Shown here: positions 42,918 to 64,000 of the stretch, piece by piece
Layout of the letters: the number at the start of each line of letters is the position of its first letter
How positions within the stretch are numbered: position 1 is the first letter of the stretch
Assembly: GCF_902459465.1 (NCBI RefSeq)
Contig: NC_047063.1
Span: 2,170,001 to 2,234,000 of the forward strand
Direction of reading: 5' to 3'
Length of the DNA stretch: 64,000 nt
Source: Asterias rubens
Taxonomy: Eukaryota
Program-made: the position numbers and the translations under genes
The notes under the pieces: generated by a model
What the model was told of the DNA's origin: nothing
The model's database searches: none
What the model saw: only the letters and a program-made list of their open reading frames with translations

Positions 42918-43017
42918 GGTAACAAGAAAACGGATAATACAAGGTATTTTTTAATGCATTTATGGTTCTTTTGGGCACTGTATCAATTTTCACTGTGTGC
43001 ATAAACTTTGGCAGAAA

Positions 43018-43985
43018 CCCAGCTAGCCAAATAGATCTGGGCCAGATCTGGCTTGTGTCTGGCATGAACTGCAACCAGATCTGGCGTGCCACATCCGGAC
43101 CAGGTCTGGCCTAAATCTGGCGTGCTCATTTTTCGCCAGATCTGGCTTGCTTATCTGGGCCAGATCTGGTGTGTTGCGTCTGGGCCAGACAAACATTCCA
43201 GATCTGGACCAGACAAACGTAACAGATCTGGACCAGACAACCATGCCAGATCTGGACAATACAAACAGGCCAGATCTGGACCAGACAAACATGCCAGATC
43301 TGGACCAGACAAACATGCCAGATCTGGACCAGACAAACATGCCAGATCTGGACCAGACAAACATGCCAGATCTGGACCAGACAAACATGCCAGATCTGGA
43401 CCAGACAACCATGCCAGATCTGGACAATACAAACAGGCCAGATCTGGACCAGACAAACAGGCCAGATCTGGACCAGACAAACATGCCAGATCTGGACCAG
43501 ACAAACATGCCAGATCTGGACCAGACAAACTTGCCAGATCTGGACTAGACAAATATTCCAGATCTGGCCCAGATAAACATGCCATGTCTGGGCCAGCTGC
43601 ACATACCAGATCTGGGCAGATAAATATACTATGTCTGGGCCAGATTAACATTCCAGATCTGGGCCAGTTGAACAGGCAACGTCTGGGCCAGATAAACATA
43701 CCAGATCTGGGTCAGTTAAACACGCTATGTCTGGGCCAGATGAACATAACAGATCTGGACCAGTTGAACATACCACGTCTGGGCCAGATTGTCTCGTCAG
43801 ATCTGGGCCAGACAAACATGCTAAGTCTATGCCAGATGACCATGCCACGTCTGGGCCAGATAAGCATGCCATGTCTCGGCAAGATGAGCATGCCAGATCT
43901 GAGCCAGATGAACATGCCAGATCAGGGCCAGATTGACATTTCAGATCTGGGCCAAATCAACATGTCATGTCTAGGCCAGAACATT
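43018..43985. repeat. 24-bp tandem array (consensus CCAGATCTGGACCAGACAAACATG), left subterminal array
   Basis: About 40 units; perfect palindrome CCAGATCTGG overlapping TCTGG-N-CCAGA; most homogeneous at ~43270-43540. Explains the overlapping repetitive ORFs. Confidence 0.95.
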
Positions 43986-44157
43986 CCAATTCAGGTAAAA
44001 AGAACCACACAAACACACCTTTTAGAATCAAGACATATTGCAGAAAGCAAAAAGTATTCTGTTACTCATTCTCTTTTTATTAACAAAAACATTGACATTT
44101 TAAGTTACGCTTAATCACAGAGCGGAAATTTCCCTATGTTCTTGTGCCCTTTTTTTT

Positions 44158-46255
44158 AGGTGTTCGGCTACCAGCCGAAAACCTATTGTTATTGTTCAGA
44201 TTTGTTTATACTTTTTCTTCTCCCTCTTCTTCTTCTTCTTCTTCCCGGGAACTTATATCCAAAGATAACTCAAGATTGAAATTGAACTGAACCTTCAAAC
44301 TTGGCACATACTTGAACCTCAACTTGAGGACGGCACTTGAACAATGACTTCATCATCAGGTGTCGAATTACATTAAATCAAAGTTTAATAATTAAAAAAA
44401 TCATAACTCCTAAAGTACACAATGGATTTTCACAAACTATACATCATCGGAAAGGTCTTATAGAGATGACCCCAATTTGATCTTGTCTTCCTGTTTATAC
44501 CGGAAGTTGAAGCCAAAAATGCTTAAAAACTCACAATTTAAGCTGTGGAGTCAATATGAAACAGAATTTGGACATGGTTTCATGTAGTCCATGACCTCTG
44601 AAAATATTATATTGATGACGTCATCAAATGTTATACTAATTGTTACGATGACAAGTTTGAAAATAAGAAATTTTTCTATTTCAAATTCCTTTTGAGCAAT
44701 CTTCATGTTGAATTTTTTGGTTAAAGATATTGACTAGAAAAGCCTAATTTTGAAATTTGAACAAAATCAGCCGTTGCATTACAAAGTTATATTAAGGTCG
44801 AAATTTTAGTGCGATCTGGTATAAAGTGTGCAATACACTCACCTCACGTGTGTTATGCACTGGAAGTTTTTACTGTATGTACATGTACATGTAATATATG
44901 TACATGTACACACATACATGCGTTGTTATGTGTACACCTACATGTGACAAGTCAGGTCTCGTCAACTTGTGTGTAATGGCGTCGCAAAGTAAACTGTCTT
45001 AAATCATGCAAAGTTCAGTGGGGAAAATGTTTCCCTTTATTTCATTCTGGTGACTTAATGTTGATAGTTGTAGAAAGAGGACACTTTACTGAGACGATCA
45101 CATGCTCGTGTGAGTTGTTTGTTGTATAATAGCGGAGAAAATGCAATCGACAAAATGATTGTCTTTCGTTCTAAATATACCATACCAATCACATACATGA
45201 CTATTCTGACAGGCGAAATATTTATTTGTACTTTTATGATCTTTATGCAAGAAGGTTTGTCATATGAACTTTCAACTTCCGGTTTAACAGGAACTAAAGG
45301 TCAAAGGGTCACACTTTGTGCATGATATTTAGAAATGCCAGAGAGCTTTAAATTGACGTCATGATTACTAATGTATCATATTTCATTAATAAGATACATG
45401 TTTTTGTTGTAGAAACTTATACTTCTGGTTTCGATCGGAAGCAGGGTCAAATGAGGCCACACATTTTGTTATCTAGGTTTGCCCGATAGCTTTAAATTGA
45501 TGTAAAAATTATCTATTTACCACGCTTCATTCATAACAAACTTTTTATATGTACAAACCTATACTTCTGGTTTCGACCGGAAGTGAAGTTCAAATTGGGT
45601 CACACATTATTCGAATTTGTTTAATTGTCCACCGGCCTTTATTAATATACACATTTACGTTCTTGAAATATGATTTTTTTTACAAAAAATTATGGAAGTA
45701 AAGGTCAAATTGGGTCACACCCTGTGTACGATTTGTTTAACACGCATGACCTTTCATATGTTTTTTTCATGTACACATTGTGGTCAAGGTTAATATAGTA
45801 AGTTTGAAGTCCATATTATGCATTGAAAGTTTTTTCATATTTCTATTCACTTAGGCTACAGCCCCAAATAACATGATTTGTTTCTTCAGTAAAGGTCAAA
45901 TGAGGTTTCATGTATTAAAAGAATCTTGAACGTAGCTCTTTTGGTTCTGAAGATATGATTTTTCAAATTATTTAAAGTGTATTTGACGTAATGACGTCAT
46001 CAATGACGTCATCAATCCCAAAAAGTTGCGGTGTTGTCTACTCACCAAGGTTGATGTTCATGAGAAGTTTTAAGTTCATACAAGTTTCAGTTTTCCTCAA
46101 ACTTTGCGGAGAAGGTTCAGGCATAAGAAAAAACGAGGAAAACAAAAAAACAACCCAGAACAACAACAATAGGTTTTCGGCTGGTAGCCGAATACCTAAA
46201 AAAACAAAACAAAATTAACAATAACAATAGTTGTTCGGCTGTTGGCCGAACACCT
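44158..46255. mobile_element. Nested non-autonomous element with inverted hairpin termini in T/A tracts (class uncertain)
   Basis: Left AGGTgTTCGGCTaccAGCCGAAaACCTattgtt at 44158; inverted copy ending 46197; a second tandem hairpin copy ending 46255; internal repeats such as tatacttctggtttcga.cggaag. Confidence 0.75.
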
Positions 46256-46364
46256 AAAAAGAAAGAAAAAACAACTTAACAATAACAATTAATAGGTATT
46301 AACACAAAAAATACAAAAATTAAGGGTCGCAGCCTAAAGGGGCTGACTAACGGGGCTGAACAAA

Positions 46365-49300
46365 TTAACGGTCATCATCGTCGGAACTACCCGCATCTAG
46401 CTCTACAGGGTTGTCCTCTGCTGGCACCTGAGGCTCTCGATCATCCCTGGAACGCCTTTTTCTTCCTCCTTGACGACCCGCATCTAGCTCTACAGGGTTG
46501 TCCTCTGCTGGCACCTGAGGCTCTAGATCATCCCTGGAACGCCTTTTTCTTCCTCCTTGACGATCCTTGGCCCCATCAAACCAGTTCACAAGGACTGACC
46601 GATACTCCCGGTCAGAAACATGTTCAAACTTCTTCCGGATAGCATCTGAAAGCAACAAATTGAAAAAAGAGTAATGTTTGCCAAGCATTTTAGTGACAGA
46701 AAAAATCTATATTAAGTCAACATGATCGTTCTTAACTTAAAATTTTTGTGCAAATTGTTTTTGCAAAAATGTGGTTTTCAAGTACCGCTTACTCTTTCTG
46801 TTTTATTTGATAAGGTTATGCGCGGTACCTTGTCTCTTCATATGCATTGTTAATACCACACCAGCTTTGCCCAGGCTGCACTGGACAACGTCATCAGGGC
46901 ATCATTACCACTGATGTCCATACGCGCAACCACAGACACAACAATCATGTTGTGTACGTGTGCGTTAGTCTTTTTTGGGAAGTGCTTGAGCGCATGTGTA
47001 CTGTACTGTTGTACTAGCCAATCATTGACCTACAAAGTGCCGGATCAATGCAGGTTTAAGAGCCATCTACACCTACGGCACTCTCGGAACCGGAGAATTT
47101 ATGACGACTTACATTGTATGCGAATGCCAACCTCTACTCTAAGTCGTCATTTTGCCGACTTACATGAATTGGATGGCCTATGCACATCTGGATCTGGATC
47201 AATACTGAAAACGATCTCCCATTATGTATTCACAAAGATTTCATTGCACTAATTCAAAGGCTCCTTTTACCCTTGTTTACTTTTACACTAGTGGTTGATT
47301 CCAGCAAATATATTGTTCACAAAAAGTCTGAGTGTTGTACATGTACATATATAAAGCAAGAATGGCGGGCCGCCGCAGTATGCATACATTGCATGCAAAA
47401 TGCTCGCATGTGTACAATGAATCAAGGGTGGTACTACGGGGATAGTTCAATAAGGGGACCCTCGATAAGGGGACCTGAATGCCATGCGCGCAGTCCTAGA
47501 CAGGGTACTGGTACATGTATTGCTCATCGTAGTGGAAGCCCCTTTTTGATTGCACACACGCATGGTCTATGTCCAGATCTGTATCGCAGGGCCGGAAGTT
47601 GATCACAATTAACATAAAATCACGTCATGACGCCATCAACATGTTATTTCAATTTTTGTCTATAACACTTCCTAAAATACCTGCATGTTGAAAGTTTAAG
47701 CCAAGTTCGGGCAAATACTTGCAAAGATATTGGGTCTTGACAATTGCATCTTTAAGATGATGTCACATGACCTGTGATGACGTCACGAAGACAAAAAGAT
47801 GTGACAGTAGACGTGGGATAGTAATCTAACTGTGTGCCAAGTATGAAGTTGATTGGCAGTGCCACATTGAGTATTGTTTCCAGACGCCTCAGCTGGCTGA
47901 ACATAGTATAGGTTATGGTGTTGCCCGACTAAATGAATGCACCAGACCGCACGCGTAGCTCAAGGAATCAACAAGGTGCATGTGTCATCTAAAAACATGA
48001 CAATTTGTCAAGCCTTTGGCTGTTCAAACAAACCTAGCTTACGGAAACGCTTTAGTGTTTTTACCAAATACTTGCCGAGGTTATACCCCAGGGCAACACT
48101 GTTGTTTAATGTTTCCTCCAACATCTTTCGGACACCCTCAGTTATACTCCGGCCGTTAAAGGCACCAAGATGCCATACCTGCAAAGAATGGATCAAAGAA
48201 TGACACAAATTGTGTTAAATTATCTCCCACTTCACGTGGCTCATATTTTTCACCATTATAACACAAACATGGGGAGTGGGGGTTGTCACTTATATTAATC
48301 ACTTGTATGAAGAGGAAGATCTATACCAAACATATTTATAACTGAGATTACAACAACATTACTAATGAAAGACGAAATTACATCTTGTTACTCTGTGGAT
48401 GTTTTTCCCGAACAGCCTTTATATATTCTTCCACTTCCTTTTTTTTTAATTCACCAATTTCTTCAGTGACATCACAAATGATGACATGAGTCCTTGCACG
48501 CTGATTCTTTTGAACTTAAACTATTTTGTGGTTTAACTGCCATTCCAAAATGGTGGCTTGTCATTTCCAAACCAGAAGCCCATTTCACAAGAGCGCTAAA
48601 AACACAGGTCCTGTGTGATGTAATCACATCGATGTCACAAACGCAGAGATATGATGCCGTGCGAAAGTGCAACCCTGTCAAGAAATTGCACGGGTCACAT
48701 GCATCGGATGGAGACCCCCTCCAAAATTTTGCATCAAAATCCATGGGATAATCACCAGGATTGAACGTAGGAATGCACGACATACGTTTAATTGCAACGG
48801 TACCATGCATTGGTGTTCATCACGGCCGCGACGGCCGTGTGCAAAATGCAAAATGACGGTTCACGAAAACAAGCCATCAAATTTTCCCACATGCATTGTC
48901 GATGCCCTAAGAACAAACCAATCTCTTTTATAAAAAAAAACTAAAAGTAAAAAAAATCCAACTTAGAGATTGAGACTTTCTCCGGACTAAAAATCATCAA
49001 GTCGCCGCGACTGATTTGTCAGATCATCCATTGATACTATAGAGGGTAGTGTACCCCCTTTTCGAAGTTTTACATCATTTCTCTGATATGTTCTTTGAAA
49101 AAAAAAATATTCTGACAATGAAGGACTTAGATTTAAACAAGGACATGGTTTGGACTTCACAAAGAGTATTTATTTTTATTCTGAAATGTGGAAATGCTGG
49201 TAAATTGGTTTTTTTTAACAGTGGTACACCTCTAGACCATAATGGTGTGATGCACTTCTACACACACGTGCTAGGATATGTTGGGCGGGACGGGTTGGTC

Positions 49301-52300
49301 AAAGAATGTCCACGAAATTTTGGATAGCAAATAATTCTCTGTTTTAGAGAATAAATTGGGATATATTTTTTAGGCAAAAACGTATGCGAATTTTGGCTGT
49401 GTATTCTTCAAATGTCGCTGCATATATTCCAAAAATTACAGTACAAAAGCAAACGCGTAAAAATTCTACCACGGGAAAAGCGCTGGTTCCCTACACTTCC
49501 ACCGTTTACAGAATGTCGCAGTACCAGCAATTCAAATATGACCTTTCAACTCCCATTCAAAAGTAGGAAAATAAGGGATGTTCGCGACCACGCGGCGTTG
49601 TACCATTCTAAATCGTGCGATTTGATCGCAGACATCGTGTCCAGCGTCAGACATCGGGCGCCGATCATGGCAGACGCGTGTTTCCAGCGCTCATGCGAAA
49701 TGGGCTAAATGTTCCATGATACTTTTGCCTCATCAAAAACTCAAGGTGTAATAGTGATAAGCACTGTGTGAATCCTGTCAAAGGCCTTCATAATATAACT
49801 TGATGTCAGTAATACACTTAAATACTCACCACTCTGCTTTGGAAAGCTGCATCTTGCAGCTTTCTCTCTACATCATTGACTTCCTCCTGAGTCTTCAGGG
49901 GGAACGTATCCCCCATACTCAAACTGTCTGATGAGGAAGGTCCACCTTGCCTGTCGGCATCACTCAGCTTTTCCACTTTGCGCCGAATGGCCCTCTGTTC
50001 AGCTTTTATCTCCTCAAGGGTCTTGAAGATGCGGTCTGAAATAATCAAATAAACAATCTTGAAGTAAACACCAGTACCATGAAGGAATCATGCATTAACA
50101 TGCTTCAAGTGGATATCTTGTACAGTCTAGAACTCAAATGGTACTGTTCACAAAAAAAAACCTCCTATAGAAAGTTCCCTAAATAACAAGTCAATATCTA
50201 CAATGTTTTCTGATTAAAGGGTTTTAAATTTGCTAGGCCTGATGTTTTGAAATTTTAACCCCAACATTTTGATTTCAACTTGAATGGCCATTTGACGCTA
50301 TCGGACAACTTACAAGCTTTTGTCGAGTCATTGCACCCAAAGAAAAATCGTCAACAAAAAGTTGTTTTGAAACAAACTGCCAAAACAAATTATTGTCAGT
50401 ATCAGAACAAAAGTCACACGACCATATCCTTATGTTTCATAATGATTGAAAGTACATGTACAAGGATTGTTCAAAGGAGACGCTGATAATCTCTCAAAAT
50501 TGTTCACTTGTAAAAATATATTTAGTTTTTTTTACTCTGGGGCCAAAAAGTGAGCCAAAGAGATTTAAAAAGTGAACATGAATTTAGATTACTTTTTTAA
50601 AGGAGCACCTGAGGGTACACCAAGCACTGAATTTTCAAACACTGTCTTTCAACTAAAACAGGGTGAATCAGAAAGAATTGTGTTCACCGAAAATTATTTC
50701 TTTTACACTTTTATCCTCAACTTGTTTGATAAGGTATATTTTGTGTTAAAACAGCTTTAATATACTTTTTTAATACTACAAATTAACCAAACCAATCTTT
50801 AATCATCTTTAATTAAATAAAAGTGAAATTTTCATTCCTTTCCAAGAGCCAACACTAAATTGAATGGGAATGGGAACAGGTACATTGATAAGTATGGTTA
50901 TTTGAGTCCACAACATGATCTTGTGGAAAGGAATGAAAATGTAACGATTTATTTGAATGAGGATAATTCTCAGGATTGGTTTGGTCGATTTTTGTAATTT
51001 AAAAAAGTATATTGAAGCTATTTTATTATAGATTATACCTTATCAAACCAATGTCTACAAATTGAGGATAAAACTGTCAAAAAAAAATATTTTCGGTAAA
51101 CACAGTTCTTTTAGATACACACTGTATTTCAACCCAGTCAGATGATATGACTGTATGCTTCTATGATTTGAACATCACACACTTGGAGTAAAACAACCTA
51201 ACACCTTTGCATTGTGATTGAAACACTACCCTATTTGCTTTACAATGTTTTTTATTTCTCATTACAATTCGTGAAATATCAAACTATAACAAAAACTTAC
51301 GCAAAATAGTCTCAATTGTTGAGGTACGGACCATGTCCTGTCCTTTAGGTGAGCTCCCCGAGGTGCTAGCTCTTGGAGTTGACACTGGAACAAATATCAG
51401 ATAGCAAATTTCAGTGCAATATTGAGAAACTTCTGTTTCAATTAAATTTCCCAAAAATTTCTCATTGTCATGATTGTGAAGCACGATTTGAGATTCACGC
51501 AAGACTAATGAGAAGGAGAGGTGAGCCATCATGTCGACACACACTCCTAGATATCTCCTAAAAGGTGCAAGCTTTCTTAGTCTTATTGCATAAAATCAAA
51601 ACTATACCAGTCTTGGATTACAAACAAAAATAGTACAGCTGACCCACTGATTGGAAAGCATAATTTTGTTTTTACCACATTGGCTGTATACCAATTCAAA
51701 CGTGAACTTTCAGTTTCGCCCATTAAGCAAGGTAAACATGGGGTCTTATTGTGGCCGAAATGTCAAGTGGTTTACGACCTACATGTACAATTTGAGGTTA
51801 GAGTTATTAATTTTTGAAAGCTTTTCCTGACTGCAGTCATGCTTCTCAGATTCAAGTTTTTGGGAATGAAAATCATCTCTTTCCCTACAACCACATAAAT
51901 TTGAAGGGATTTTCTTTCTCAAAAATGTATTATTACTATCAACAGTTGCAGCGCACCTTGCCAAGTAAGTTTTCATGTCAATATTTGTTTTGAGTAATTA
52001 CTAAATGTGTGGCTTTACAACTGACCACGTCATTGTCAAGTCACTGCAATGAACACACTATTGTACTGATATTGCTTGTATATAGTCACTCCAAGTTTAA
52101 TTTCAAACTCATGTACGGAAGATTGGAAATAAATTGTGAAAACAAAACAATTCTAGCAGCTATAATTACTAGCAAATTGAGTTTTAAAAATTGCTATTCT
52201 CTCAAGAGTTTACTTACACGCTCGTTTTGGTGTCACTACTGATGGGGTATGTCGGTCAAGAACTGCAGGTGGTGTAGGAAGTACCGGTAGGCCTACAGGT

Positions 52301-55300
52301 GGCGTAGGTACAGCTGATACCGGTGTTACAGATGTGGTTGGATTATCATCCGAATCAGTATCTGAATACTGTCTTGCAGCCCTAAGAGATTTAAAATGAT
52401 AATGATTGGCAAAGGTTAGAACAGGAAAATAAAATTGACAGATAGAACTACATGTATTTTGATCTACACAAAGTCAAAATTTAGACAAAACATATTCATA
52501 ACTGTTAGAAATGTTACAAATATGGTGATCCTCAGTGCAAAAATCAAAATGACAAAGTGTGATATGGGTAATGTCATTACTATGATTTCCAGAAATGTTG
52601 ATTTGACGAAATTGAAACATGTAAGAAAATGTGGCAAGCTTGGTAACCTTGTAAGTTTATGGAGGGGGTACAATATACCGGTACCTTGTTGAACTTGTCA
52701 ATTGTTAGCGTGGCCCCCAAAGATCCAGGGATAACAGAGACTGGGGTAGGGTGTAGTTTTGTGAAGTGTTACTAACACACAGTACTGGCTAAGTCTCTGC
52801 AGGAGTGCAGGACCCAGCACTCTTTTTCATTGGTACCAGTACCCCACCCAGTACAGATTGTATTCTACTAAAGCTTGCTTTGTTATTTGTACAACCATGG
52901 CAGTATATGCCATGCAAACCAGTTGGTACAATCAATCATCAAAACTGGCAATGGAACACTTGCAAAATGATTTTGACCGTTCCATGACATCTGGATTTTT
53001 CACAGTGAATAATTTAATAGATGAGAAAATTTGTATCGAACATTTTTTTCCATGAAAAACGATCGAGAATCCATGAAAGTGCAAATTAATTATTCTTGTT
53101 TTTACATTCTGGCACCAAACACAGCTTTTCAAGGTATTTTTATCATGTTTTCTTGAGTTGTAGTGAAACACATTTGACCATGGTTCAACTCACTTCATCA
53201 GTCCATTGACCCGCCATGTCTTTGCTCTAATATAGACTTGCAAAGCTACATGTGCCTACAGTCTTCAATTTGCCCGAGTTTGTTGTTGACAAACTATGTT
53301 TTGACTCTTGCCCATGTTCTAGGAGACTACTTGACAAGTGTGATTTATTACCTTTTACGTCTTTTTGTTCGCCCCAAGTTCTCAATATCTGTAGAGTCTG
53401 CATTAGAGCTGTCCTCAAGTCGCAGCAACTTGCGATTTAATTGCTTCATCCCAGTCATCTGAATATTACAGGATATGGTATACTAAACAAACTCAAACGT
53501 ATTGTGCACATATTGCCATTAGCAATGTTCTCACTGTGTGAGATTCAACACATAAATGTAAGTGAAAAAAACCTGTAAAAATAAACAGAAGGATGGGCCA
53601 TTTGGGAGACCATACACATAAAGGAAAACAAAAAAACAAAAAACAAAAAAAAACAATTTCAAAATGTTTCCGGTCCTTTTTCCACAAGTTTTGTATTATT
53701 ACTAATTAGACCATGAGCAAATGACTGTAATCCGGTTACGACAACAATATTTTGTCTCTAAAGGTTGGCTGTTACATTAGGGCGACCTCCAAGAAACTAA
53801 GTGCACCCATTAGTACACATGCAGCAACTAAGGGGATTATAAGGAACTAAACCTGTGTCTAGTATAGATGCTCCACTGCACTATGGACATTTACATAGGA
53901 CAAAGGAACTATGAATTTACCCACTAAATGTGAATCTAATTACAGGTGTATATGTACAGAGAAAATTGGAAAATTAAAGTGAATGCATGGTAAAAAAAGA
54001 AGAAAAAAGGTATCCTTGGACTTCTTGAGGTCAAGAAGTCAATTAACTCCAGTTAAAACTCTTTTATAAAATAATTTGGAGAGAAAACAACCCAGGGCCA
54101 AGAAAGTGTACAAGAAATAATTTAAACCAAATTAAGTAACCAAAATCAGAGTCCTTCAACAACATGGAAACATAATAAAATCTCTGAACATCACCAGTAA
54201 CTACATGTACAGTGTGAAAACTAAACAAAAAGGACTACTGTGCCAGTCCAGTGCCACTTCTAGTACCATCTTGGTTCACACGCCCCAATAAACATTGAAT
54301 AAACAAATGTGGTCAGAGAAGTCTTTGCTGGGTGATAAAACATGTGGCAAACCAATTACTGCATCCTGTTCTAATTTCGAAACTATGTGCACCTCATTAC
54401 ATATGCAGCAACTTAGGGGATTAAGGAACAAAACTGTGGGTATACTACACTGCACTATGGACATTAACACAGGACAAAGGAATTTACCCACTAAATGTGA
54501 ATCTATGTAGTTTATATGTAGTTTGTACAGAGAAAAGTGGAATATTAAAGCTTTGGCAATCAGCGGCAATGCATGGTTGAAAATAAGTAAAACTAGTGAA
54601 AATAAGTCAAATTAGAGTTATGTTAGTTCAAACACAGAAATAAGCTGTTGCTATATAATATGCCTACAGGGTACGTGAGTCTGAAAAAAGCTTAACCAAA
54701 TGAACACATTTTTTATGAAAAAGCCGTTTAGGTTTTGAACAAATAATCAATTTTATTTGATGCGATGTGCATTCAAGTTACAGTCGTTTTTTGTATCCAT
54801 TTTTAATGCTTGTTGAGATCCCTATCTGAAAATAAGGTATGTACAGTACATGTACATGTACGTGCTGTACACTAATAATACTGTGGTCAAGCATTCTTTC
54901 CTCCACGAGTCAAGTAATATTTGAAAACCGCCTGTATGCTTAGTAGGTATTGCATACAAAATAGTGCTTATTCTAAACATACTGTGAAAGATTAGCATTC
55001 TCGCAGCGTTTGTGAAATTTATGCATCCCACAAATTTATGTTCTCATTAAATTCTGTTAGCCGACAAAAAAACTACTAAAAGCAAATTTTGGGTAATCGA
55101 AACAAAAAGACCTACTTCACACATACCCCCCCCCCCCCATTGCTGGAACAGAAACAGAGATGATTTACAGGGTACCCGTGTCATTAGTGTTCCAAGCCAA
55201 GACCTAGTCAGACGTACCACTCTTGAAACTGAGACATGTCTTGAGCCCAGCACTGACATGGATTCTTTAAAGTTGCAGTGTTAAAATCAGTTGTTAGGGG

Positions 55301-56131
55301 GAACTGGTCCTTCTTTCTTTGTAAGTGACTGTAGTTTGCCCAAACTCTGGTATCTGAAACTTTCGGAGTAAACTTGTAAGAATACTTGAATTCACGCAAC
55401 AGACATTTTTCGTTAATCAATTTGGAGGTATGAAAAATATGTGTATTTTGCAAGATTTTCTTAAACATTATTCTCTAAATATTTTTCCAAAGGCCTTTAT
55501 TTTTTAATTGTTAAAACTTATTTTAGTGAATGCTTTATTTGTTCATACTCCTGCACATGAACTTATACAAAGTTTCATTTTCGCTTTTTTCCTAATTTTA
55601 AATTCTTTGAAAATTAAACTTTCAAATGAGGATATTCTAGTGCAAGAGGATTCACTTTATTATATAGTTCAGTCCAATTTCCACTTGCTTTTCGGGCAGG
55701 AAAAAGTTTCATAAAGAAGCACTTCCATAGAGCATTATTAGACAGGGAAAAATCCACATGGCATATTCCTTATCAGGAAAACACCAAACTGCTTGTTTCC
55801 TAAATCCTTATTTAGAAACACAGTACACAGTTTGACTGATTAGGCATTATACCAAACTGGCCAGAGGAATGGAAATTAGTGCATGTACACAGTTAGTTTG
55901 TACTATGAAACAAACATTGTTTAACTTACTTGAAGTAAACCACTCCTTGATGGGAAATGACTCCCAGTCATCTCCTGGAATCTCCCTTCGTCTGCAAGCA
56001 TTACGACATCGTGTTGTGTCATCATAGGGAGGCCAAAGGGCACAGCTAATCCCATCAAGCCATGTAGATGGGATGACTGCCAGGGTCTTCTCATCAGTGA
56101 ACTCTACTACTCTGTAAATATGGTCTGGCAT
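46365..56131 (-). CDS. Spliced DUF4806-type transposon accessory gene, one apparent frameshift
   Basis: Exons 55930-56131 (YRVVEF..VIPSTWL..WPPY..PGDDW), 53352-53458, 52218-52381, 51301-51384, 49830-50035 (FPLKTQEEVNDVERKL), ~48072-48178 (ITEGVRKMLEETLNNSVALGYN), 46365-~46649 (WFDGAKDRQGGRKRR). Phases agree except a +1 shift near 53441; the last junction is unresolved. Confidence 0.7.
46390..46563 (-). repeat. 87-bp (29-codon) tandem duplication in last exon of accessory gene
   Basis: RQGGRKRRSRDD(L/R)EPQVPAEDNPVELDAG occurs twice with near-identical DNA. Confidence 0.9.
50659..51124. mobile_element. Long-TIR MITE, Tc1/mariner-like, intronic
   Basis: Left cagggtgaatcagaaagaattgtgttcaccgaaaat.. 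and reverse-complemented right tacagtgtgtatctaaaagaactgtgtttaccgaaaat..; ~200-bp imperfect arms. Confidence 0.7.
53795..54568 (+). repeat. Dispersed direct duplication of ~190 bp (53795-53992 and 54381-54568)
   Basis: Shared atgcagcaact.aggggatta, actgcactatggacatt, gaatttacccactaaatgtgaatcta, gtacagagaaaa. Confidence 0.8.
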
Positions 56132-56662
56132 GTTTTCTGATCTATTTGGTAAAAATTAATTATCGTTAATGATTAATTTGAAATTGGATTCCAGGACCTG
56201 CAAAAAATGCAGTGTTTTATGTCAGCACTAATCTACAGCAATATCCTGCAGTAATGAACTATAGGTTGTAGTTTTAGTTAGAAAATTTGCCAGCAATAAT
56301 TATGTACACGAACAAAAAATTTTAAAAATGAAGTTACGGCAAAGGTGACATAGCAAATGAACTGTTCCAGGTATGTTATATTTAATTTTTAAAATGACAC
56401 TTGACAAGGCATGGTTGAGAGCCCTACAAACTAATCCTACCTAAGTGTAAAAACCTGATCTTACTGCACTGTTCTCCCGCAGTTTAAGGAACAAGTCCAG
56501 CCGGAACATTATTCACAAGTGCGCTAGCAAAACAGGGAACTAACTTTCATGTACATAACCAACCATGCCTGTGTACTGTCTGCATTAATCATTCAAAGCC
56601 ACGAACATAATTTCAGTCAATTCACTTTGATCCATTCCCCCAATCAGATTGCTTATTGAGCT

Positions 56663-58978
56663 CTACACAAACTGATGCAAAAGAGGAATAAGAATGTAAG
56701 AGTTCTTGTAGGGAAGCCTGATGTATTTACAGCTAACTTCTGATAATGCAGCGCACCTAAGGGAACTTGAAAGTTCAGATACTTGAAATATTCCTAAATG
56801 AGATGAGGGAAGTGGATAATCAAAGAAGTCTGAGGCTCTTTTGAACGGTTCATATAGAATACAAACATCTGAATCATGTTTTTGAAGAATATTGCGAATC
56901 AGGCCTTTGTCATCACCTACACGGATACAGTTATCTGCCTTTTGCACAGAGAAAAACAAATTGCCACAGTGCACATTTGTAAACTGGGTATAACCTCTGT
57001 ATGTATAGGGAAGTGGTCCTGCCGTATGTTTCTTTCTAGGAATGTTATCCATTGTTTTTGAAGGTTTGCCAGCCTCTTCTTGTCTCTTTCTTTCTGAAAT
57101 TCGTCTTATAACTTGCGATAATGGATCATTGGGTTTTCTCAACATCCTTTTCAGTTTACCCAAGAAACTTTCAAAAGCAAAAGCTGAGAACTTGTCAAGG
57201 GGACCAAACTTTCTCACATCAGCAGTTATGTGTATCAAATTGTGTACATTATACACTAACATGTTTTTACCATAAAGATCACCAAACTGCTGTACAAATA
57301 GCAGTAGCAACTTCTCTGCATAATCACACATATATGTACTCAGACAATACACTGGATTACACAAACAAAATATTGCCACAAAAAACAATAAGAAATGCTT
57401 ATAGAATGTCTCAGGCAAATCTGTCTTCAGTGAAACAATGCCACTGTAAAGTATAAACTGACGGAATTCTGTTGCTTTCCACCTATCAAATTCACTAAGT
57501 GATCTGCATTTCCTTGGGAATTCACGTGGGATATAGGAGTGAAACGACAACAACAAATCAGAAATAGCTTGAACATTATTGCCACCTATCCGACATCTGG
57601 TCACCACTGGACCTCTTATCCAAAGCCCAATAAGCTTCTTCACTACACCAAGATATATAAGATGCATGGGATCAAGAACAAATTGAGACACCAAACCAAC
57701 AGATAATCTACATAAAGGAGTCTGAGTTGGTCCATGGTGATTGCGGTCTGACATTTCATTCACACTTTCATCAGTGCGTAACTGAGCATCAGTTTGTGGA
57801 AAGGTAACTTTGTCTTGCCAATCCCCGCGTTGAACACATCTTTCGCACCCATAATATGCATTGTGTGATTTAGTTCCCTTCACCATTGCCCGAGCAGGTG
57901 CATCACAGATGAAACAAGATATCTCAACCAAAATGGGATTCATTGATCTTTCCACTAATACACCATGTGATTCAATACTTTTCATCTCGTCAACAAAATC
58001 ATGAAGATATTCCTCCATACTTAAAGGCTTGTGCTCACCACAGAACAGACCTATAATAAATGGTGCAGAATCCTCAAGTTCAATAATCCTACCCAATATG
58101 GGCCAGAGTTGTGTTTTGGAACTCTTGAAGAGTGGAATCCCATCAATGTTGATTTGAATGTGAAGTAATTGCACATTCATTGAAATATTAACTATGCCAA
58201 GTTTCTCTGAAACACCTTTTGCAATTCCAAAGTGATAATACTTTCCCCCAGCAATTCCCTTCAATTCATAGGACCGCTTTGTTGAAAGGAGTGTCCGCGG
58301 ATCTTTTGGTAAACTTGGGAAGTGTGCATGCAATAACTTTAAAAGATCTCGCAAAGCAACATGAGCAACACAGTGTTTGGTAGCCCATGAAGCCAACTCA
58401 AATGCTACATCTTCTGTTTCATTTTTACATGAATTACTAATACTAGCCTCATCGCTGGACCCATCATCAGATGTGGGAAATGAGTACCAGCTCAAAACAG
58501 TTGATACATCACTGTCAATGTCATCACCTTCATCATGAAGTGGCTCTACGAAATGATCTTGATAATAAGTTTCAGACAGGTGGGGTTCAGGAGTATCAAG
58601 AGTAACGCTGAATTGTGAATCTCCTTCATGTTCAAACTCTGCCATGTTTGTCTTGTTTGTAATGTCAGATAATATACTATGAGCATCACCATGATCGCCA
58701 CTGTCGGTACTAGCACTAGCAGTAGTGCCATGGCCAGTAACCTCAATCATGTCAATGCTACCATCTTGATAGGCTCCAACCTGACCGGTATGATTGGGCT
58801 GCACTTCACACAAATTTACCCCAGGTTCTTCTGTTTGACAAGGGATTAGAGGTTCATCATTCGACTGACAAGGTGTCTCTATTGCATTCAACCAGTTGAC
58901 AACATTATGCATGTGAGCAGCTGTATTATCATTTACAGTTCTGCGCTTTGTCCAATAAGATCCCCCATTCCGTTTCAT
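56663..58978 (-). CDS. CACTA/EnSpm-like DDE transposase (771 aa), intact ORF
   Basis: LPKDPRTLL, QINIDGIPLFKSSKTQLWPILG, FICDAPARA..K.HNAYYGCERC, DPMHLIYLGVVKKL, WKATEFRQF, YNVHNLIH, FAFESFLG; putative D-D-E residues retained; intronless. Confidence 0.9.
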   Translation of the reverse strand: MKRNGGSYWTKRRTVNDNTAAHMHNVVNWLNAIETPCQSNDEPLIPCQTEEPGVNLCEVQPNHTGQVGAYQDGSIDMIEVTGHGTTASASTDSGDHGDAHSILSDITNKTNMAEFEHEGDSQFSVTLDTPEPHLSETYYQDHFVEPLHDEGDDIDSDVSTVLSWYSFPTSDDGSSDEASISNSCKNETEDVAFELASWATKHCVAHVALRDLLKLLHAHFPSLPKDPRTLLSTKRSYELKGIAGGKYYHFGIAKGVSEKLGIVNISMNVQLLHIQINIDGIPLFKSSKTQLWPILGRIIELEDSAPFIIGLFCGEHKPLSMEEYLHDFVDEMKSIESHGVLVERSMNPILVEISCFICDAPARAMVKGTKSHNAYYGCERCVQRGDWQDKVTFPQTDAQLRTDESVNEMSDRNHHGPTQTPLCRLSVGLVSQFVLDPMHLIYLGVVKKLIGLWIRGPVVTRCRIGGNNVQAISDLLLSFHSYIPREFPRKCRSLSEFDRWKATEFRQFILYSGIVSLKTDLPETFYKHFLLFFVAIFCLCNPVYCLSTYMCDYAEKLLLLFVQQFGDLYGKNMLVYNVHNLIHITADVRKFGPLDKFSAFAFESFLGKLKRMLRKPNDPLSQVIRRISERKRQEEAGKPSKTMDNIPRKKHTAGPLPYTYRGYTQFTNVHCGNLFFSVQKADNCIRVGDDKGLIRNILQKHDSDVCILYEPFKRASDFFDYPLPSSHLGIFQVSELSSSLRCAALSEVSCKYIRLPYKNSYILIPLLHQFV

Positions 58979-61900
58979 GGTGTTGTCGCGATGAAGGGTA
59001 TTAATATCAAAACGTGAATTTAATTTTCAATGATCGTATCATCTGGAACATAATTTGTTTACTATTTAATAATAAAAGTAGGTGATGAAGAGGCAAGGCA
59101 ATAAAAAGCAATGGCGCAACGTTGACAAAAATTCCCAAAACTTTAGTTTTATCTGTTAAATAAAACGTGTTAGATTTAATTAATTCTTTCGGGAAAAAAA
59201 ATCTAGCTAGGCCTAGGTCTAAATCTGACTACATTTACGGCCTAGGCTGTCCTGGCTGTATGATTTGATTAATTCATACCAAACAGAAGTAGAGAAATTC
59301 CTCAAAGTTCCTTGTCCAGGCGTTGATCGAGGATGTCAGTTGTCGATGTCACGCAGCACGGATGTGAAGATCACGGAGCGGCGAAAGCAAGTGGTAGAGC
59401 ACAGTGCGCCGGCGAGTTGTGCCACGTACGTCGGCAAGACCGGTTGTCTTGAGAGCATTCTAGGCTTGTGATTGGCTCATAGTTCATTTCTATGGTGAGC
59501 ATTAATCGTTGATCTGCGCCCTCTATATATTTATAAAAACAATTTATGTGACAAACGACTCCATGTGTTAAAATATTAGCCAGAATAACTGCAAAGATTG
59601 TAATAAAACAAAATCAAAAATTTTAAAACTGCTCTGGTGAGTCAAAAACTTTGGACCTTGTTTAGCCGACTGTTATTTTTATTATTTAACACGAACGAGC
59701 CTATTACTCCGTGTCTGGGATAGTCTGGCTCCCAGACCTAAATACTTTTGATTACATGTGTTGAATGACCGGTTCGTCAGAAAATAATTTGTCAATAAAC
59801 CAGACTAAAGCGTGGTCGCACCACAGATCATGACCACGTCCATTTTAATGTGTAGGGGCTTTTTATGGTGTTTACCAATAATAATGAGTTGAAGTCCCAG
59901 TCTTTCGTTTGTCCTTTCTTTGTAATTTTATTTATAGTTTTTAATGTTTAAAAGTGTGATTGATCTTATTTTAAGATTGAACAGTATGAAAATACTGAAA
60001 TAAAAGTATCCTGTAAAGTTGATCTGACATGACTGTTTCGATTTGGTTGATCATTTTTTGACTTTAATCAGTGTTTTTTAAAATTTAAATCATTCAGTGG
60101 TCTACTGTACTTCTTGTTAATGATATTCCTGCGCTGCACAAGGTAACTTTTGAAGTTAGCAGTAGTGTGTTCTCCGTTAGGTCGTGCTTGTCTGGCTCTG
60201 CTTCGCCGTTGGCGGCGCCATGATTAAGAGGTTTTTCGGCTAAAGGGGGCGCCATTAATTTGCCCGCCTCGTGAAAAATATGCTGCCGACATGACCGTCC
60301 CTTATTCGGACAAATTAGTAGGATGATATTAATTTTTATATCGGTAAATGTAAACCTTACCATTGTTTGTAAACATTGACGCCATTTGTATGGCCTGCCG
60401 CAAGCCCACCGATTGAAAACATGGATAGCAACCTACTTTGCCCCAAAACAGTCTCATAACACTTAAGAAATAAAAGGCTGGCTATGAATTCTGTAGCTTT
60501 GCATTATTTACTTTTGTGTAGTTTTAACAATCAACTCAGTTCTTTAATATTTCTTCTTCATTTTTGCAGCGTCGGTCGGCATGGTTTACCGAGCCCTGGT
60601 TGGCAAAAATATGTTCTTTGTTTTTTACATGGGCGCGTGCATATCCGTTATAATGCCAATACCAATGCCCGTCTGTTTGTGAAAACGACAAAATGCGATT
60701 CCTGAGATAAGCGCCCCTTTTATACGCAATTAATACTTCAGCAAAGTTTTGCTCAAGAATGTTTGTCTTTGTCCATAATGTGGGTTTAAGGCCAATACGT
60801 GTAAAAGACGACGGATTTGAGCAACAAGATTTTATCCAATTAGTCCCGGACAATTTTGGGAAAATATGCATTTTTTAGAATTAAAACGAAACAGAATTAC
60901 TTGTAATAACCCACGCGGGATTTCGGATACACATTTGGCGAAATAGATTGAGGATAATATTATATTAAAAGAAAACAGGAATGCGGAATAGGAATTTTGG
61001 AAGGAAACAAACAAATAAAACAAAACATGCGAATGGCATAAGATGAAAACAAAAATCAAACATGCTACCGGCCGAGGTATAATTATACATATTGCATCTT
61101 TTCTTCTCTCCCTTTCTGTCCCGTGTAAGTTTTCTCTCTTCCCCAAGCGACCCCCCCCCCCCCCCTGCCTCAGGGCGTGTCGTTGTTGTAGGCCTAACTT
61201 AAATTTACTGGCCAACTTCTAGCTACGGGTGAACACATTCTGGAGATCATAACAAATTATTTGAAAATGAAACTTCTTCATACGATCTCTTGACAAGAAT
61301 TTTGAAGCAATACAAAATCAAATGAAATACTTGGTAGCACGAATAATGTCGGGATCCCATTATATCAATTCATTTTTAGAAAGCTTACACAAAGCTTGTA
61401 TTATGACATCAATACAGTTTAATCTCATAATTTTTCTTTTTTTATTAAATTACAAAAAATAGGCCCAAATGTATTGAAATTGGGCATGATAATAAAATGT
61501 GATAATTTGCCAGAGCGCATGGATAACACCTTTTAAGTGGACTCGGGGTATGACAAAGAGTACCGTCATTTTGAGACAATTTGCTATTTCCTTTTATTGT
61601 TCTTTACTTTTTAAGACTTATTCAAATAATAAACACATTTTTCCATCACTTAACAACATCTTGGTAAGATACGGTCACCCCAACTCTGAAGTGGGGATTA
61701 TACCCAGCCAACCGGATTTTGTTAGTTCCGTGGAAGATCGTCAAAGAACGGGAAGCCCCCGACAATTTTGAAATTGTCTGGGTGATTCGGGAATCCTTTT
61801 TTAGTGTATTCCAACCTAATTCTAGATTATTCTTACACATTTCATAGGGTTATTTTATGTGTTTCTGGGTGATTCTCGAGTTATTCGTGTATAAATGGTA

Positions 61901-62330
61901 TCATACAACATTGGTAATGTTGATGGCAAAGTGTTCATACTCTGTGCGATTCAACATACACGGGAAATAACAAACCTGTGAATAGTGAGCTCAATTGGTC
62001 ACCCGTCACGGGAAAATTGTGAAAAACTGTTTCAATTTTGTCACAGCAAATTGTAGTCGTTGATAGCCATGGAAAATCTATGACTATATCAACGATCATT
62101 CGGCCGGACCATCGTTTGAAAAACTACAAAATTAATGTTTTCTATAGAAAATGGAAGAATTTCAGACGCTAAAATTTCACTGGATGACTTGTACCTACTT
62201 ATAAGTAAGTAATTTCATTCTTACTCAACAATTCTGATTAAGGGTTTCTGCAAATGGTGTATCCTCCCTTTAAAGACAAAATTGCTATATCATTCTTTAC
62301 AAAAACGCTTCAATTCAAAAATAATCTGAA

Positions 62331-64000
62331 TGGTTTGGCCAGAACTGGCCCAGATCTAACACCATCTAAGATGGTGTGGCCAGACCTGGCCCAGTTATAG
62401 CTTCATTTATCCTGGTTTAATCAGACCTGGCCCAGATTAGAAATGGTCTTACCTGGTAAGGCCAGACCTGGCCCAGATACAGCATGATCGAATCTAGTTT
62501 TGCCAGACGTGGCCCAGATCTGATATGGTGTATCTTGGTTTTGCCAGACCGGGCCAAGATCTAACATCATCTAAGATGGTGAGGCCAAACCTGGCCCAAA
62601 CATAGCATGATCTAATTGGTTTAACCAGACCTGAACCAGATCGGGCATGATCTCACCTGCTTTAAGTAGATCTGGCCAAGATAAAAAATGATCTAACTTA
62701 GTTTGGCCAGACCTGGCCCAGATAAACCATCATCTTTAATGGTGTGGCCAGACCAGCCCCAGTTATAGCTTCATTTATCCTGGTTTGGCCAGAACTGGCC
62801 CAGATCAGGAATGATCTTACCTGGTAAAGCCAGACCTGGCCCAGATACAGCATGATCGAATCTAGTTTTGCCAGACGTGGCCCAGATCTGATGGTGTATC
62901 TTGGTTTTGCCAGACCGGGCCAAGATCTATTAACATCTAAGATGGTGAGGCCAAACCTGGCCCAAACATAGCATGATCTAATTTGGTTTAACCAGACCTG
63001 ACCCAGATCAGGCATGATTTCACCTGCTTTACTAGACCTGGCCCAGATCAGAAATGATCTAACTCGATTAACCGGACCTGAACCAGATCGGGCATGATCT
63101 CACCTGCTTTAAGTAGATCTGGCCAAGATAAAAAATGATCTAACTTAGTTTGGCCAGACCTGGCCCAGATAAACCATCATCTTAAATGGTGTGGCCAGAC
63201 CTGGCCCAGTTATAGCATCATTTATCCTGGTTTGGCCAGAACTGGCCCAGATCAAGAATGATTTCACCTGCTTTAACTAGACCTGGCCCAGATCAGAAAT
63301 GATCTAACTTAGTTTGGCCAGACCTGGCCCAGATATTACATCATCTTAAATGGTGTGGCCATACCTAGCCCAGATATAGCTTCATTTTTCCTGGTTTGGC
63401 CAGAACTGGCCCAGATCAAGAATGATTTCACCTGCTTTAACTAGACCTGGCCCAGATCAGAAATGATCTAACTTAGTTTGGCCAGACCTGGCCCAGATAT
63501 TACATCATCTTAAATGGTGTGGCCAGACCTAGCCCAGATATAGCTTCATTTTTCCTGGTTTGGCCAGAACTGGTCCAGATCAGGAATGATCTCACCAGGT
63601 TCGGCCAGACCTGGCCCAGGTCAAACATGACCTAACCTGGTTTGGCAACATCTGGCCCAGATATAAAATCCTCTTAAATGGTTTTGCCAGACCTGACCTA
63701 GATCAGGAATGATCTTAACTGGTTTTGCCAGACCTGGCCCAGATTAGAAATGATCTAACCTGGTTAGGCCAGATCTGGCCCAGAACAGACATGATCTTCC
63801 CTGCTTTGGCCACACCTGGCCCAGATCTGACATGATTTAACATGGTTTACCCGGACCTGGCCGAGATCTAACATAATCTACCATGGTTTCACCGGACCTG
63901 GCCCAGATTTGACATGATATAACATGGTTTAACCGGACCTGGCCCAGATCTGACATGATATAACATGGTTTAACCGGACCTGGCCCAGATCTGACATAAT
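62331..64000. repeat. 41-bp tandem array with higher-order structure (core CCAGACCTGGCCCAGATC), right subterminal array
   Basis: About 40 units to window edge, e.g. ccggacctggcccagatctgacatgatataacatggtttaa; variable ~24-nt portion; multi-unit blocks recur. Confidence 0.95.

Follow-up and report, generated by a model that had tools for sequence, protein, structure and literature searches.

A probable TRC-type CACTA/EnSpm transposon of 21 kb with palindromic subterminal arrays and a BEN-type second gene in Asterias rubens

Genes and features of the locus

The stretch of DNA analysed here (the window) comprises 64,000 nucleotides of the Asterias rubens genome. A transposon of 21,135 bp extends from position 43018 of the window to 64152, its last 152 bp lying beyond the window. 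It carries a transposase gene and, directly downstream on the same strand, a multi-exon accessory gene, and both are enclosed by subterminal tandem arrays (Table 1).

Table 1. Features of the transposon and of its insertion site, in window positions
Feature	Position	Strand	Remark
Left copy of target-site duplication (AA)	43016..43017	.	4 A in empty paralogous site against 3+3 in occupied site
Left terminus: TIR CCCAGCTAGCCA and about 160 bp of palindromic motifs at irregular spacing	43018..43178	+	Aligns inverted with right terminus
Left subterminal array, 24-bp unit, 32.4 copies, 81% matches	43179..43954	.	TRF
Nested, unrelated multi-copy TIR element, about 2.1 kb, 70-81-nt inverted ends	44135..46278	.	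3' of accessory gene
Accessory last exon E6, end of BEN-like domain and basic ...DRQGGRKRR tail	46368..46691	-	tblastn with full-length homologues; tblastx to L034 and L036
Accessory exon E5, middle of DUF4806/BEN-like domain	48023..48178	-	P0139 residues 278-329
Accessory exon E4, coiled-coil segment and start of DUF4806/BEN-like domain	49824..50033	-	P0139 residues 211-278
Local long inverted repeat, intronic, not a dispersed MITE	50690..51092	.	Elsewhere only in fragment copy on contig C8
Accessory exon E3, proline-rich and acidic linker	52270..52368	-	Weak match to P0160 residues 102-134; open frame 52213-52473
Accessory exon E2, helix after N-terminal barrel and KRRKR motif	53351..53462	-	Homology
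Accessory exon E1, conserved N-terminal beta-barrel domain	55943..56131	-	61% identity to L036
Transposase, single 771-aa ORF, DDE triad D279, D359, E504	56663..58978	-	Open, full length against homologues
Element's own 5' region upstream of transposase	58979..62330	.	Single copy except 130-bp dispersed repeat 61894-62023
Right subterminal array, 41-bp unit, 164-bp higher-order period	62331..64000	.	Runs on to 64078 (L009:1078)
Right terminus, ending ...TTAGCTGGG	64079-64152 (window-equivalent)		Follows 41-bp array
Right copy of target-site duplication (AA)	64153-64154 (window-equivalent)		Beyond window

A preliminary description of this DNA had spoken of an intact transposase, and the open, full-length reading frame agrees with this. 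Homologues with 47-53% identity over the full length are present in Patella, sea urchin, sea cucumber, crab and sturgeon. In an alignment of 25 sequences the three residues of the DDE triad are invariant, and so are a CxxC (C378, C381) and an HxxxH (H579, H583) motif. This assembly contains a single copy of the transposase. No Pfam family matched it, even at E <= 10 and with Transposase_21 (PF02992) included; among 25 close relatives PF13960 is matched by 14, PF02992 by one and Plavaka by one. Residues ~250-640 share 31-34% identity (E 1e-31 to 1e-39) with six ORFs of the A. rubens genome, and the loci of these six exceed the PF02992 cut-off. The predicted superfamily membership of the window transposase rests on such transitive homology to Tnp2-type enzymes.

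The accessory gene had been described as having seven exons, of which homology backs six coding ones. Proteins of its family have a small beta barrel at the N-terminus and, in addition, a coiled coil and a DUF4806 domain. In at least eight A. rubens loci, and also in the related loci L035 and L036, exon 1 follows closely after the transposase; its domain has 231 database relatives. The model of this N-terminal domain (pLDDT 90.7) matches Tudor structures with Z 3.9-4.9, which suggests a weak resemblance to Tudor. Exon E4 is conserved in L034, L035 and L036, and exon E6 contains an in-frame 87-bp tandem duplication (46389-46563, TRF). In exon E2 the homology changes its reading frame near 53434-53436, which is either an apparent frameshift or due to an error in the assembly. 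On account of this frame break, full autonomy of the copy may have been lost.

The DUF4806 domain is split over three exons, and exon E4 alone matches PF16064 (positions 4-33) with E 0.043 and 14.6 bits (cut-off 25), while seven of ten full-length homologues lie above the DUF4806 cut-off. The fold comparison was made with an AF2 model of P0139, a homologue that shares 52% identity with the window protein over exon 1. It was found that the modelled domain superposes on the entire BEN domain with Z 7.7-11.1, the top non-BEN match having Z 4.2. Of the BEN-DNA complexes BEND6 gives Z 11.1 (rmsd 1.9, 86/92 residues), followed by Insv (Z 9.2), BANP (Z 8.9) and Bsg25A (Z 8.5). According to this model, DUF4806 in the accessory family has the BEN DNA-binding fold. 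A passage of PMC10723407 that cites Pan et al. 2023 had earlier named DUF4806 a BEN subtype. The Pfam families of plant En/Spm TnpA were matched neither by any exon nor by the ten full-length homologues.

The introns had been thought to be filled with nested MITEs, but they consist of unique sequence; 52480-55900 is single copy in the genome and the intronic inverted repeat recurs only in the C8 fragment. The only multi-copy nested element, of which the genome has dozens of copies at 76-88% identity, lies outside the introns.

Boundaries, insertion site and state of the copy

The left end begins with CCCAG at 43018 as had been described, and its TIR is mirrored at the right end by CCCAGCTAACCA (the reverse complement of L009:1141-1152). 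When inverted, the two termini are identical at 11 of 12 positions at the tip and have a mean column identity of 77% in an alignment of ~190 columns. The inverted CCCAG terminus that had been predicted past 64000 does close the right array, and it reads ...GGTTAGCTGGG at L009:1142-1152, followed by AA(A). A paralogous empty site, of the kind that had been proposed as a check, was found 28 kb downstream (C2:2261984-2262699), where both flanks are joined directly. The empty site shows 4 A against 6 in the occupied one, and this supports a target-site duplication of 2 bp matching the AA before 43018. On a contig of organism B the last 48 bp of the right end match and divergence begins exactly after ...CTGGG (64152); a unitig of organism C terminates at the same position.

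The array periods differ and the element is unusually long, which might suggest that two unrelated arrays, or two elements, happen to flank ordinary genes. Such a chance juxtaposition is hardly credible, as precisely 43018-64152 is missing at the empty site, with a difference of 2 bp left over, the two termini repeat each other in inverted orientation, and a motif common to both ends is missing in between. The view that this is one CACTA/EnSpm-like transposon with subterminal arrays is supported together by its termini, the empty site, the point of divergence in organism B, the DDE transposase homology and the conserved second gene.

It is a separate matter whether the copy is a dead relic, immobile and non-autonomous at present. 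The genome has one full copy and one 4.2-kb fragment, none of the RNA runs searched contains the transposon, a foreign element is nested in it, and the accessory gene has its frame break in exon 2. On the other hand, this break could be an assembly indel, the transposase frame is wholly open and retains its catalytic residues, the two termini are nearly identical and the array cores are homogeneous. In addition, a near-identical transposase is present in several other organisms, in organism B at another site. A dead relic is a possibility that we take seriously but lean against.

Subterminal arrays and their palindromic motif

Both arrays were confirmed, the left one of 24-bp units, which had been put at about 1 kb, at 43179-43954, and the right one of 41-bp units, put at 1.67 kb or more, from 62331 to 64078, where it comprises ~42.6 copies. 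In size they amount to ~0.8-1 kb on the side of the accessory gene and ~1.75 kb on the side of the transposase. Occurrence of the arrays throughout the genome apart from the transposase would have spoken against a role as transposon ends; the pattern of the 24-bp unit (up to three mismatches) has 18 genome occurrences, every one within this transposon, and the unit is found nowhere else in the genome.

The two arrays have a common palindromic core, TCTGG-N-CCAGA overlapping CCAGATCTGG (also given as TCTGG-N-CCAGATCTGG). Local alignment of the consensus units gave a score of 17 in inverted and 19 in direct orientation, whereas 500 shuffles gave 6.4 +/- 1.6 with a maximum of 14. As judged from the sequences, the 24-bp and 41-bp consensuses are related far beyond chance. 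It should be noted here that the units had been described as matching in inverted orientation at 17 of 20 positions. Their relatedness stands, but a uniquely inverted relation does not, given the palindromic nature of the core; in direct orientation the alignment (22 of 26 columns) is no worse than those 17 of 20. The left end has 25 occurrences of the motif CTGGNCCAG and the right end over 40, with none in the 18-kb interior of the element or in positions 1-43017 of the window.

A palindrome related to this core, TGG[CG]CCA (TGG-S-CCA), clusters at the ends of three independent elements, and palindromes of this type are dense at both ends of relatives in a limpet and elsewhere in the A. rubens genome. 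In the relative L036 the palindrome is CAGCGG/CCGCTG, so the TGG-S-CCA core is not universal within the clade.

It could be that the arrays are neutral, satellite-like expansions, with cis function confined to the terminal 100-300 bp and with no function in their size or their two periods. The central units of the left array are identical and those at its inner edge have diverged, the right array has its 164-bp higher-order structure, and the arrays of organisms B and C are one 41-bp unit apart. Related loci have only 6.6-15.5 units, and in the Patella relative, which has CA/CA flanks, scattered motifs over ~0.1-0.5 kb suffice. Against neutrality, arrays of kilobase or near-kilobase size (~0.9-1 kb) recur in two further family members, L036 and the C15 relative, and expansion has therefore been repeatedly tolerated or favoured. 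We regard neutral arrays as quite possible, though somewhat short of even odds; as regards the motif itself, this view is compatible with the explanation that we prefer, in which the motif would be a binding site.

Relation to known elements and proposed mechanism

The termini of TRC elements begin with CCC, and their target-site duplication measures 2 bp; these elements reach a large size (5-9 kb or more) and have a region of tandem repeats in their interior (PMC1636069, PMC4298943). The start with CCC and the 2-bp duplication are common to SmTRC1 of Schistosoma mansoni, the TRCs of Aedes and Tribolium, Spongebob/EnSpm-4N1_HM of Hydra and the present transposon, whose terminus CCCAGCTAGCCA compares with CCCAGTCAAC in the Aedes TRC and CCCAGCCAACATTGAC in Hydra. 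A Tnp2-type DDE enzyme, large size and tandem repeats are shared as well. Unlike the TRCs, the A. rubens transposon reaches 21 kb, has kilobase arrays derived from one palindrome at both ends, and adds a conserved second gene with a DUF4806/BEN fold, which is undescribed in PMC1636069 and PMC4298943. Chapaev, also of the CMC superfamily, has a transposase of the same DDE megafamily and is likewise found in animals, but its termini are 5'-CAC...GTG-3' and its duplications 3-4 bp (PMC4079192); an identity with Chapaev was rejected in view of the termini CCCAG...CTGGG and the 2-bp duplication.

In maize En/Spm the non-catalytic protein TnpA binds the subterminal motifs, and TnpD acts at the termini. 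Like En/Spm and other plant CACTA elements (TnpA/TnpD), the A. rubens transposon has two genes on one strand and fields of a short motif in subterminal position at both ends. Subterminal repeats and two ORFs are described for CACTA elements in general (PMC8978399). A further trait of the group is a second protein made along with the transposase through alternative splicing of one transcript; of this, the second gene on the same strand is seen here. Plant elements differ in having CACTA termini and a 3-bp duplication, against CCCAG and 2 bp here, and subterminal regions that span a few hundred bp (PMC8978399), where the A. rubens transposon has 1-1.8 kb; moreover, TnpA is unrelated to BEN/DUF4806. 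The BEN proteins Insv, BANP, BEND6, Bsg25A/Elba, NACC1 and LIN-14 have their fold in common with the accessory family. In contrast to these proteins, the gene for the accessory BEN-type domain is part of a transposon that pairs it with a DDE transposase, and the palindromic arrays are the candidate target of the domain. The kind of element is already known; only the array size and the BEN-type partner protein are new.

Our main reading, to which we give a probability of about 0.8, is that the 21,135-bp transposon belongs to the animal 'TRC' clade within the CACTA/EnSpm (CMC) superfamily and came here through cut-and-paste insertion, with AA as the duplicated 2 bp. By analogy with maize En/Spm, the accessory protein of BEN type would bind the palindromes as dimers and bring both ends together, and the transposase would cut at the CCCAG termini. 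The labour would then be split as in En/Spm, with one protein on the motif and the DDE transposase cutting. That the DUF4806 protein is an analogue of TnpA, as had been suggested, gains support because its domain has a BEN DNA-binding fold, and it probably recognises the palindromic arrays. The kilobase size of the arrays would most likely have come from slippage or unequal exchange among repeats of the binding site, and not from a need for many sites.

Alternatively, the N-terminal region of the transposase could read the palindrome, with chromatin or regulation left to the accessory protein, e.g. via its Tudor-like barrel. Subterminal repeats are bound by the transposase in many DNA transposons, a conserved region (~residues 190-260) precedes the DDE core, and the N-terminal domain of the accessory protein is weakly Tudor-like. 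This division of roles appears unlikely to us, as BEN domains are DNA-binding modules with structures solved on DNA, the long helix ahead of the BEN-like domain in the P0139 model would suit dimers on palindromes, and the motif binder in En/Spm is the non-catalytic protein.

To our knowledge, CACTA/EnSpm elements of animals have been catalogued but little studied mechanistically. For the question of what takes the role of plant TnpA in them, the present locus supplies an entire element whose boundaries are proven, together with a defined candidate motif in cis and a candidate trans factor that has a DNA-binding fold, and it thus reduces this question to a simple binding and excision experiment. 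Should binding fail, an ordinary, well-annotated transposon insertion would remain. The locus is also a clean example of binding-site repeats expanded into kilobase tandem arrays. A wider reading, which we offer tentatively and as a whole think rather improbable, is that DUF4806/BEN-fold proteins are the TnpA-equivalent end-binding factor of a metazoan-wide EnSpm/TRC clade and that they read a conserved TGG-S-CCA palindrome, with the flanks giving family specificity. If this were true, runaway amplification of binding sites (1-1.8-kb arrays) would be one way for transposon ends to become satellite DNA, and near-identical copies in a species with otherwise unalignable flanks would point to horizontal transfer. 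On this view the host DUF4806/BEN genes of flies and fish would be transposon partners that became domesticated. For many orphan DUF4806/BEN-like genes of animals, the locus offers a likely source and a DNA target that can be tested.

Boundaries, insertion and interior of the element

The element extends from 43018 to 64152 (21,135 bp), because inverted termini were located at both limits and the left end aligns with the reverse complement of the right. The left terminus is CCCAGCTAGCCA at 43018, preceded by AAA. An inverted right terminus had been predicted in the preliminary description, and it is present in the 10 kb of the assembly (L009) that follow the window (C2:2170001-2234000), where ...GGTTAGCTGGG lies at L009:1142-1152 and is followed by AAAGG. 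About 180 bp from each end can be aligned in inverted orientation with 77% mean column identity; 11 of the 12 tip positions agree, and some 20 bp inward both ends have a TCTGG-S-CCAGATCTGG block. Tandem Repeats Finder delimited a 24-bp array on the left (43179-43954; 32.4 copies, 81% matches) and a 41-bp array with a 164-bp higher order on the right, running from 62331 through the end of the window. The 41-bp array extends to L009:1078, which is equivalent to window position 64078, and the right terminus is reached 74 bases beyond it.

The insertion is documented by an empty site in a paralogous segment 28 kb downstream. The 518 bp to the left of 43018 match C2:2261984-2262486 (95%), the 218 bp to the right of the element match C2:2262485-2262699 (88%), and the two flanks are adjacent there. 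The empty site reads GGCAG-AAAA-GGTCAGG while the occupied site reads GGCAG-AAA, element, AAA-GGTCAGG; the two extra A residues therefore represent a 2-bp target-site duplication. The paralogous segment as a whole (C2:2261984-2262699, L044) is a local segmental duplication of the insertion region. The right junction was also checked by aligning contigs of four public runs to L009:1040-3500. Contigs of the source sample span the junction between element and flank. A 1,845-bp contig of organism B aligns with the element's final 48 bp and diverges exactly after ...CTGGG into unrelated sequence, and a unitig of organism C ends at the same base. Both organisms carry one 41-bp unit more near the terminus. 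About 100 bp from the insertion point lies a 174-aa ORF with a GIY-YIG domain (42393-42917, minus strand; Pfam E 1.3e-05), which is probably a Penelope-like retroelement since its 3' part (42500-42856) has dozens of genome copies at 90-98% identity.

It had been suggested that the introns of the accessory gene have collected nested MITEs. This was rejected, as 52480-55900 is single copy in the genome and the inverted repeat at 50690-51092 has no counterpart other than one in a fragment on C8. This fragment is a second copy of 48071-52269, 4.2 kb long and 96-98% identical, divided by an 11-kb insertion (C8:17077752-17079480 and 17090675-17093125; L055, L056). Both of its limits lie inside accessory-gene exons; because it is interrupted and has neither ends nor transposase, it represents part of a sister copy. 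The region 58979-62330 is also single copy. Because the interior is largely single copy, the 21-kb size is mostly the element's own sequence and nested repeats have a minor share. Within the otherwise unique 5' region, a 130-bp piece at 61894-62023 resembles many dispersed loci (75-88% identity) and is probably a short SINE-like repeat.

Genes and nested insertion of the element
Feature	Position in window	Strand	Remark
Transposase ORF, 771 aa	56663-58978	-	open frame
Accessory exon E1	56131-55943	-	homologue-guided
Accessory exon E2	53462-53351	-	homologue-guided
Accessory exon E3	about 52368-52270	-	homologue-guided
Accessory exon E4	50033-49824	-	homologue-guided
Accessory exon E5	48178-48023	-	homologue-guided
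Accessory exon E6	46691-46368	-	homologue-guided
Nested unrelated TIR element	44135-46278		dozens of genome copies

The transposase and its BEN-type partner

A word-indexed protein search found 723 relatives of the transposase. The best of these are 47-53% identical, with coverage up to full length, and come from limpet, sea urchin, sea cucumbers, crab and sturgeon; several are named "transposase domain-containing". D279, D359 and E504 are invariant in a 25-sequence alignment, together with the residues of a CxxC and an HxxxH pair. The window protein itself matches no Pfam family down to E <= 10, and a profile search with the alignment found no matching solved structure. PF13960 is matched by 14 of the 25 relatives, while PF02992 (Transposase_21) and Plavaka are matched by one each. 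Furthermore, five ORFs of this genome (C10:11226025, C10:12238364, C60:57450, C32:183346 and C15:13127708) show 31-34% identity to the transposase, with E 1e-31 to 1e-39, and all five loci pass the PF02992 gathering cut-off. By transitive sequence homology the transposase can thus be placed in the Tnp2/CACTA superfamily, a membership which rests on the Pfam matches of its relatives. The assembly contains one copy of it; its next relatives share 42-50% identity with it and fall into several subfamilies, of which some have more than one intact copy.

Animal members of the CACTA superfamily designated "TRC" by DeMarco et al. have termini starting with CCC and a 2-bp duplication (PMC1636069); the Aedes TRC terminus is CCCAGTCAAC (PMC1636069). 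Hydra Spongebob/EnSpm-4N1_HM ends in CCCAGCCAACATTGAC and also makes a 2-bp duplication (Zhang et al., PMC4298943). The window element shares both features with the animal TRC group. Chapaev elements have CAC...GTG termini and a duplication of 3-4 bp (PMC4079192), and membership in this group was ruled out as both termini and duplication length disagree.

The conserved coding block that constitutes E1 begins the accessory gene 530 bp downstream of the transposase. Relatives of this block lie directly downstream of related transposases at seven other loci in the genome, and likewise in a limpet (Patella) locus, L035, and an ENA contig, L036. An exhaustive phmmer search with its 63 residues found 231 proteins; among 10 full-length ones, DUF4806 scores above the Pfam cut-off in 7, at residues ~200-340. 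Using full-length homologues as guides and searching the exons singly, we mapped six coding exons supported by homology. E4, E5 and E6 together cover residues 211-368 of the full-length homologue P0139 without gaps; the DUF4806 region is therefore complete and open. E4 alone falls below the DUF4806 threshold (E 0.043), and a six-frame Pfam search of the genome gave no DUF4806 match because introns split the domain. In E2 the homology changes reading frame near 53434-53436; if the best splice sites are used, the upstream frame runs into a stop after 14 codons. The break is due either to a true frameshift or to an indel in the assembly. E6 carries an in-frame 87-bp tandem duplication (46389-46563, 2 copies, 98%) that doubles a basic ...GGRKRRSRDD... 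tail.

The accessory family has a BEN fold. P0139, a natural homologue, was modelled with AlphaFold2 from a 13-sequence alignment as a stand-in for the window protein; mean pLDDT is 73.9, and both folded domains exceed 90. For its DUF4806 region the top of the Foldseek list holds BEN domains only (BANP, BEND6, Bsg25A, NACC1, Insv; probability 0.97-1.0). VIA-align scored BEND6 at Z 11.1 (86 of 92 residues, rmsd 1.9 A), Insv at 9.2, BANP at 8.9 and Bsg25A at 8.5; the top match outside the BEN group reached 4.2, and one weaker BEN entry, an NMR structure, 4.5. PMC10723407 and PMC10789644 already class DUF4806 as a BEN subtype, each with reference to Pan et al. 2023. In the P0139 model a helix of 34 residues lies ahead of the DUF4806 domain. 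The exon 1 domain of the window protein, modelled from 61 sequences (pLDDT 90.7), is a small beta barrel whose sole matches are Tudor domains at Z 3.9-4.9, too weak for a fold name. This 63-residue N-terminal barrel is matched in 28 separate stretches of the database protein P0121 (3017 aa) and 11 of P0122 (864 aa), both of which contain it in long tandem arrays.

Palindromes at the ends of the element and its relatives

The overlapping palindromes TCTGG-N-CCAGA and CCAGATCTGG are present in both the 24-bp and the 41-bp units. The two units are clearly related by sequence: their consensuses align with a score of 19 when direct and 17 when inverted (shuffles 6.4 +/- 1.6, maximum 14). The preliminary description had one unit as the inverse of the other; the kinship holds, and the strictly inverted orientation was set aside as undecidable from these scores. 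The left terminal kilobase contains CTGGNCCAG 25 times and the right end more than 40 times; both the 18.3-kb interior and the window's remaining 43 kb lack it. At up to 3 mismatches, the 24-bp pattern has 18 occurrences in the 418-Mb genome, every one within the element. Arrays of the 41-bp unit, 6.6-15.5 units long, also adjoin CCCAGCAACCATG termini at a few other loci (two on C5, one each on C16 and C22), where the genome transposase search gave no match. Three short arrays with such termini, L028 (C22:6481.8k), L029 (C5:17340.1k) and L030 (C5:20.3k), have one flanking sequence in common beyond the terminus; they lie either within one dispersed repeat or in a mobile unit larger than the CACTA-like end. 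The arrays have probably grown by slippage or unequal exchange.

Related elements carry comparable ends. The limpet element (L035:5705-17577; termini CCCAGACAGC, CA/CA duplication) has, at its ends, repeated palindromes resembling TCTGGCCCAGAT and ATGTGGCCCACAT. An 11.6-kb relative on C15 (G000:C15:6609338-6620899; L057, L016, L058), with termini CCCAGATAGCAAG and a 44% identical transposase, has TGTTGGCCCAACA-like palindromes at both ends and an 866-bp array starting 180 bp from the transposase-side terminus. TGG[CG]CCA falls at the ends in 45 of 47 cases in the window element, 20 of 21 in the limpet element and 15 of 17 in the C15 relative; the window's other 43 kb contain six. In L036 a different palindrome, CAGCGG/CCGCTG, forms a 1.0-kb array adjoining the terminus CCCAGATAGCAC, and its left terminus was not found within 10 kb of contig sequence. 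At L034 (C15:12478242) accessory exons are present, the transposase is broken and no array was found within 8 kb. Since end palindromes occur in the limpet element, the C15 relative and L036 as well as in the window element, palindromic subterminal fields are a trait of the clade, in which kilobase arrays are recurrent; the window element stands out in that each of its ends has a large array. To its right, the C15 relative is flanked by masked sequence (N). Further copies of this relative are found at C10:11834720 and C60:40115, and the three look like a younger multi-copy subfamily because the 709-aa transposase frame is open in all of them.

Activity, spread and a possible mechanism

The intact transposase ORF, well-matched termini and homogeneous array cores favour activity. 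Current autonomy is disfavoured by the frame break in exon 2, the single full copy and the absence of the element from RNA runs in a public-run 31-mer search. Of the 31-mers from the transposase region, about half recur in DNA runs from a marine metagenome and four further organisms, which corresponds to roughly 2% divergence. In organism B (runs X4-X7) the element is at a different site, and despite the close transposase sequence the 2.4-kb flank goes almost unmatched at 92% identity, a level that just 8 contigs reach or exceed. This could reflect horizontal transfer; equally, organism B could be a distant host in which the element is conserved.

The analysis establishes the insertion with its boundaries, both genes, the family's BEN fold and the restriction of the palindromes to the ends. 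A mechanism can be proposed by analogy with En/Spm. The palindromes would be bound by dimers of the BEN-type protein, and this binding may draw the two ends of the element together, whereupon the DDE transposase would cleave at CCCAG. The element is of a known kind, an animal CACTA/EnSpm transposon of the TRC clade; the literature searched does not describe its BEN/DUF4806 partner gene, nor arrays that repeat one palindrome over kilobases at each end.
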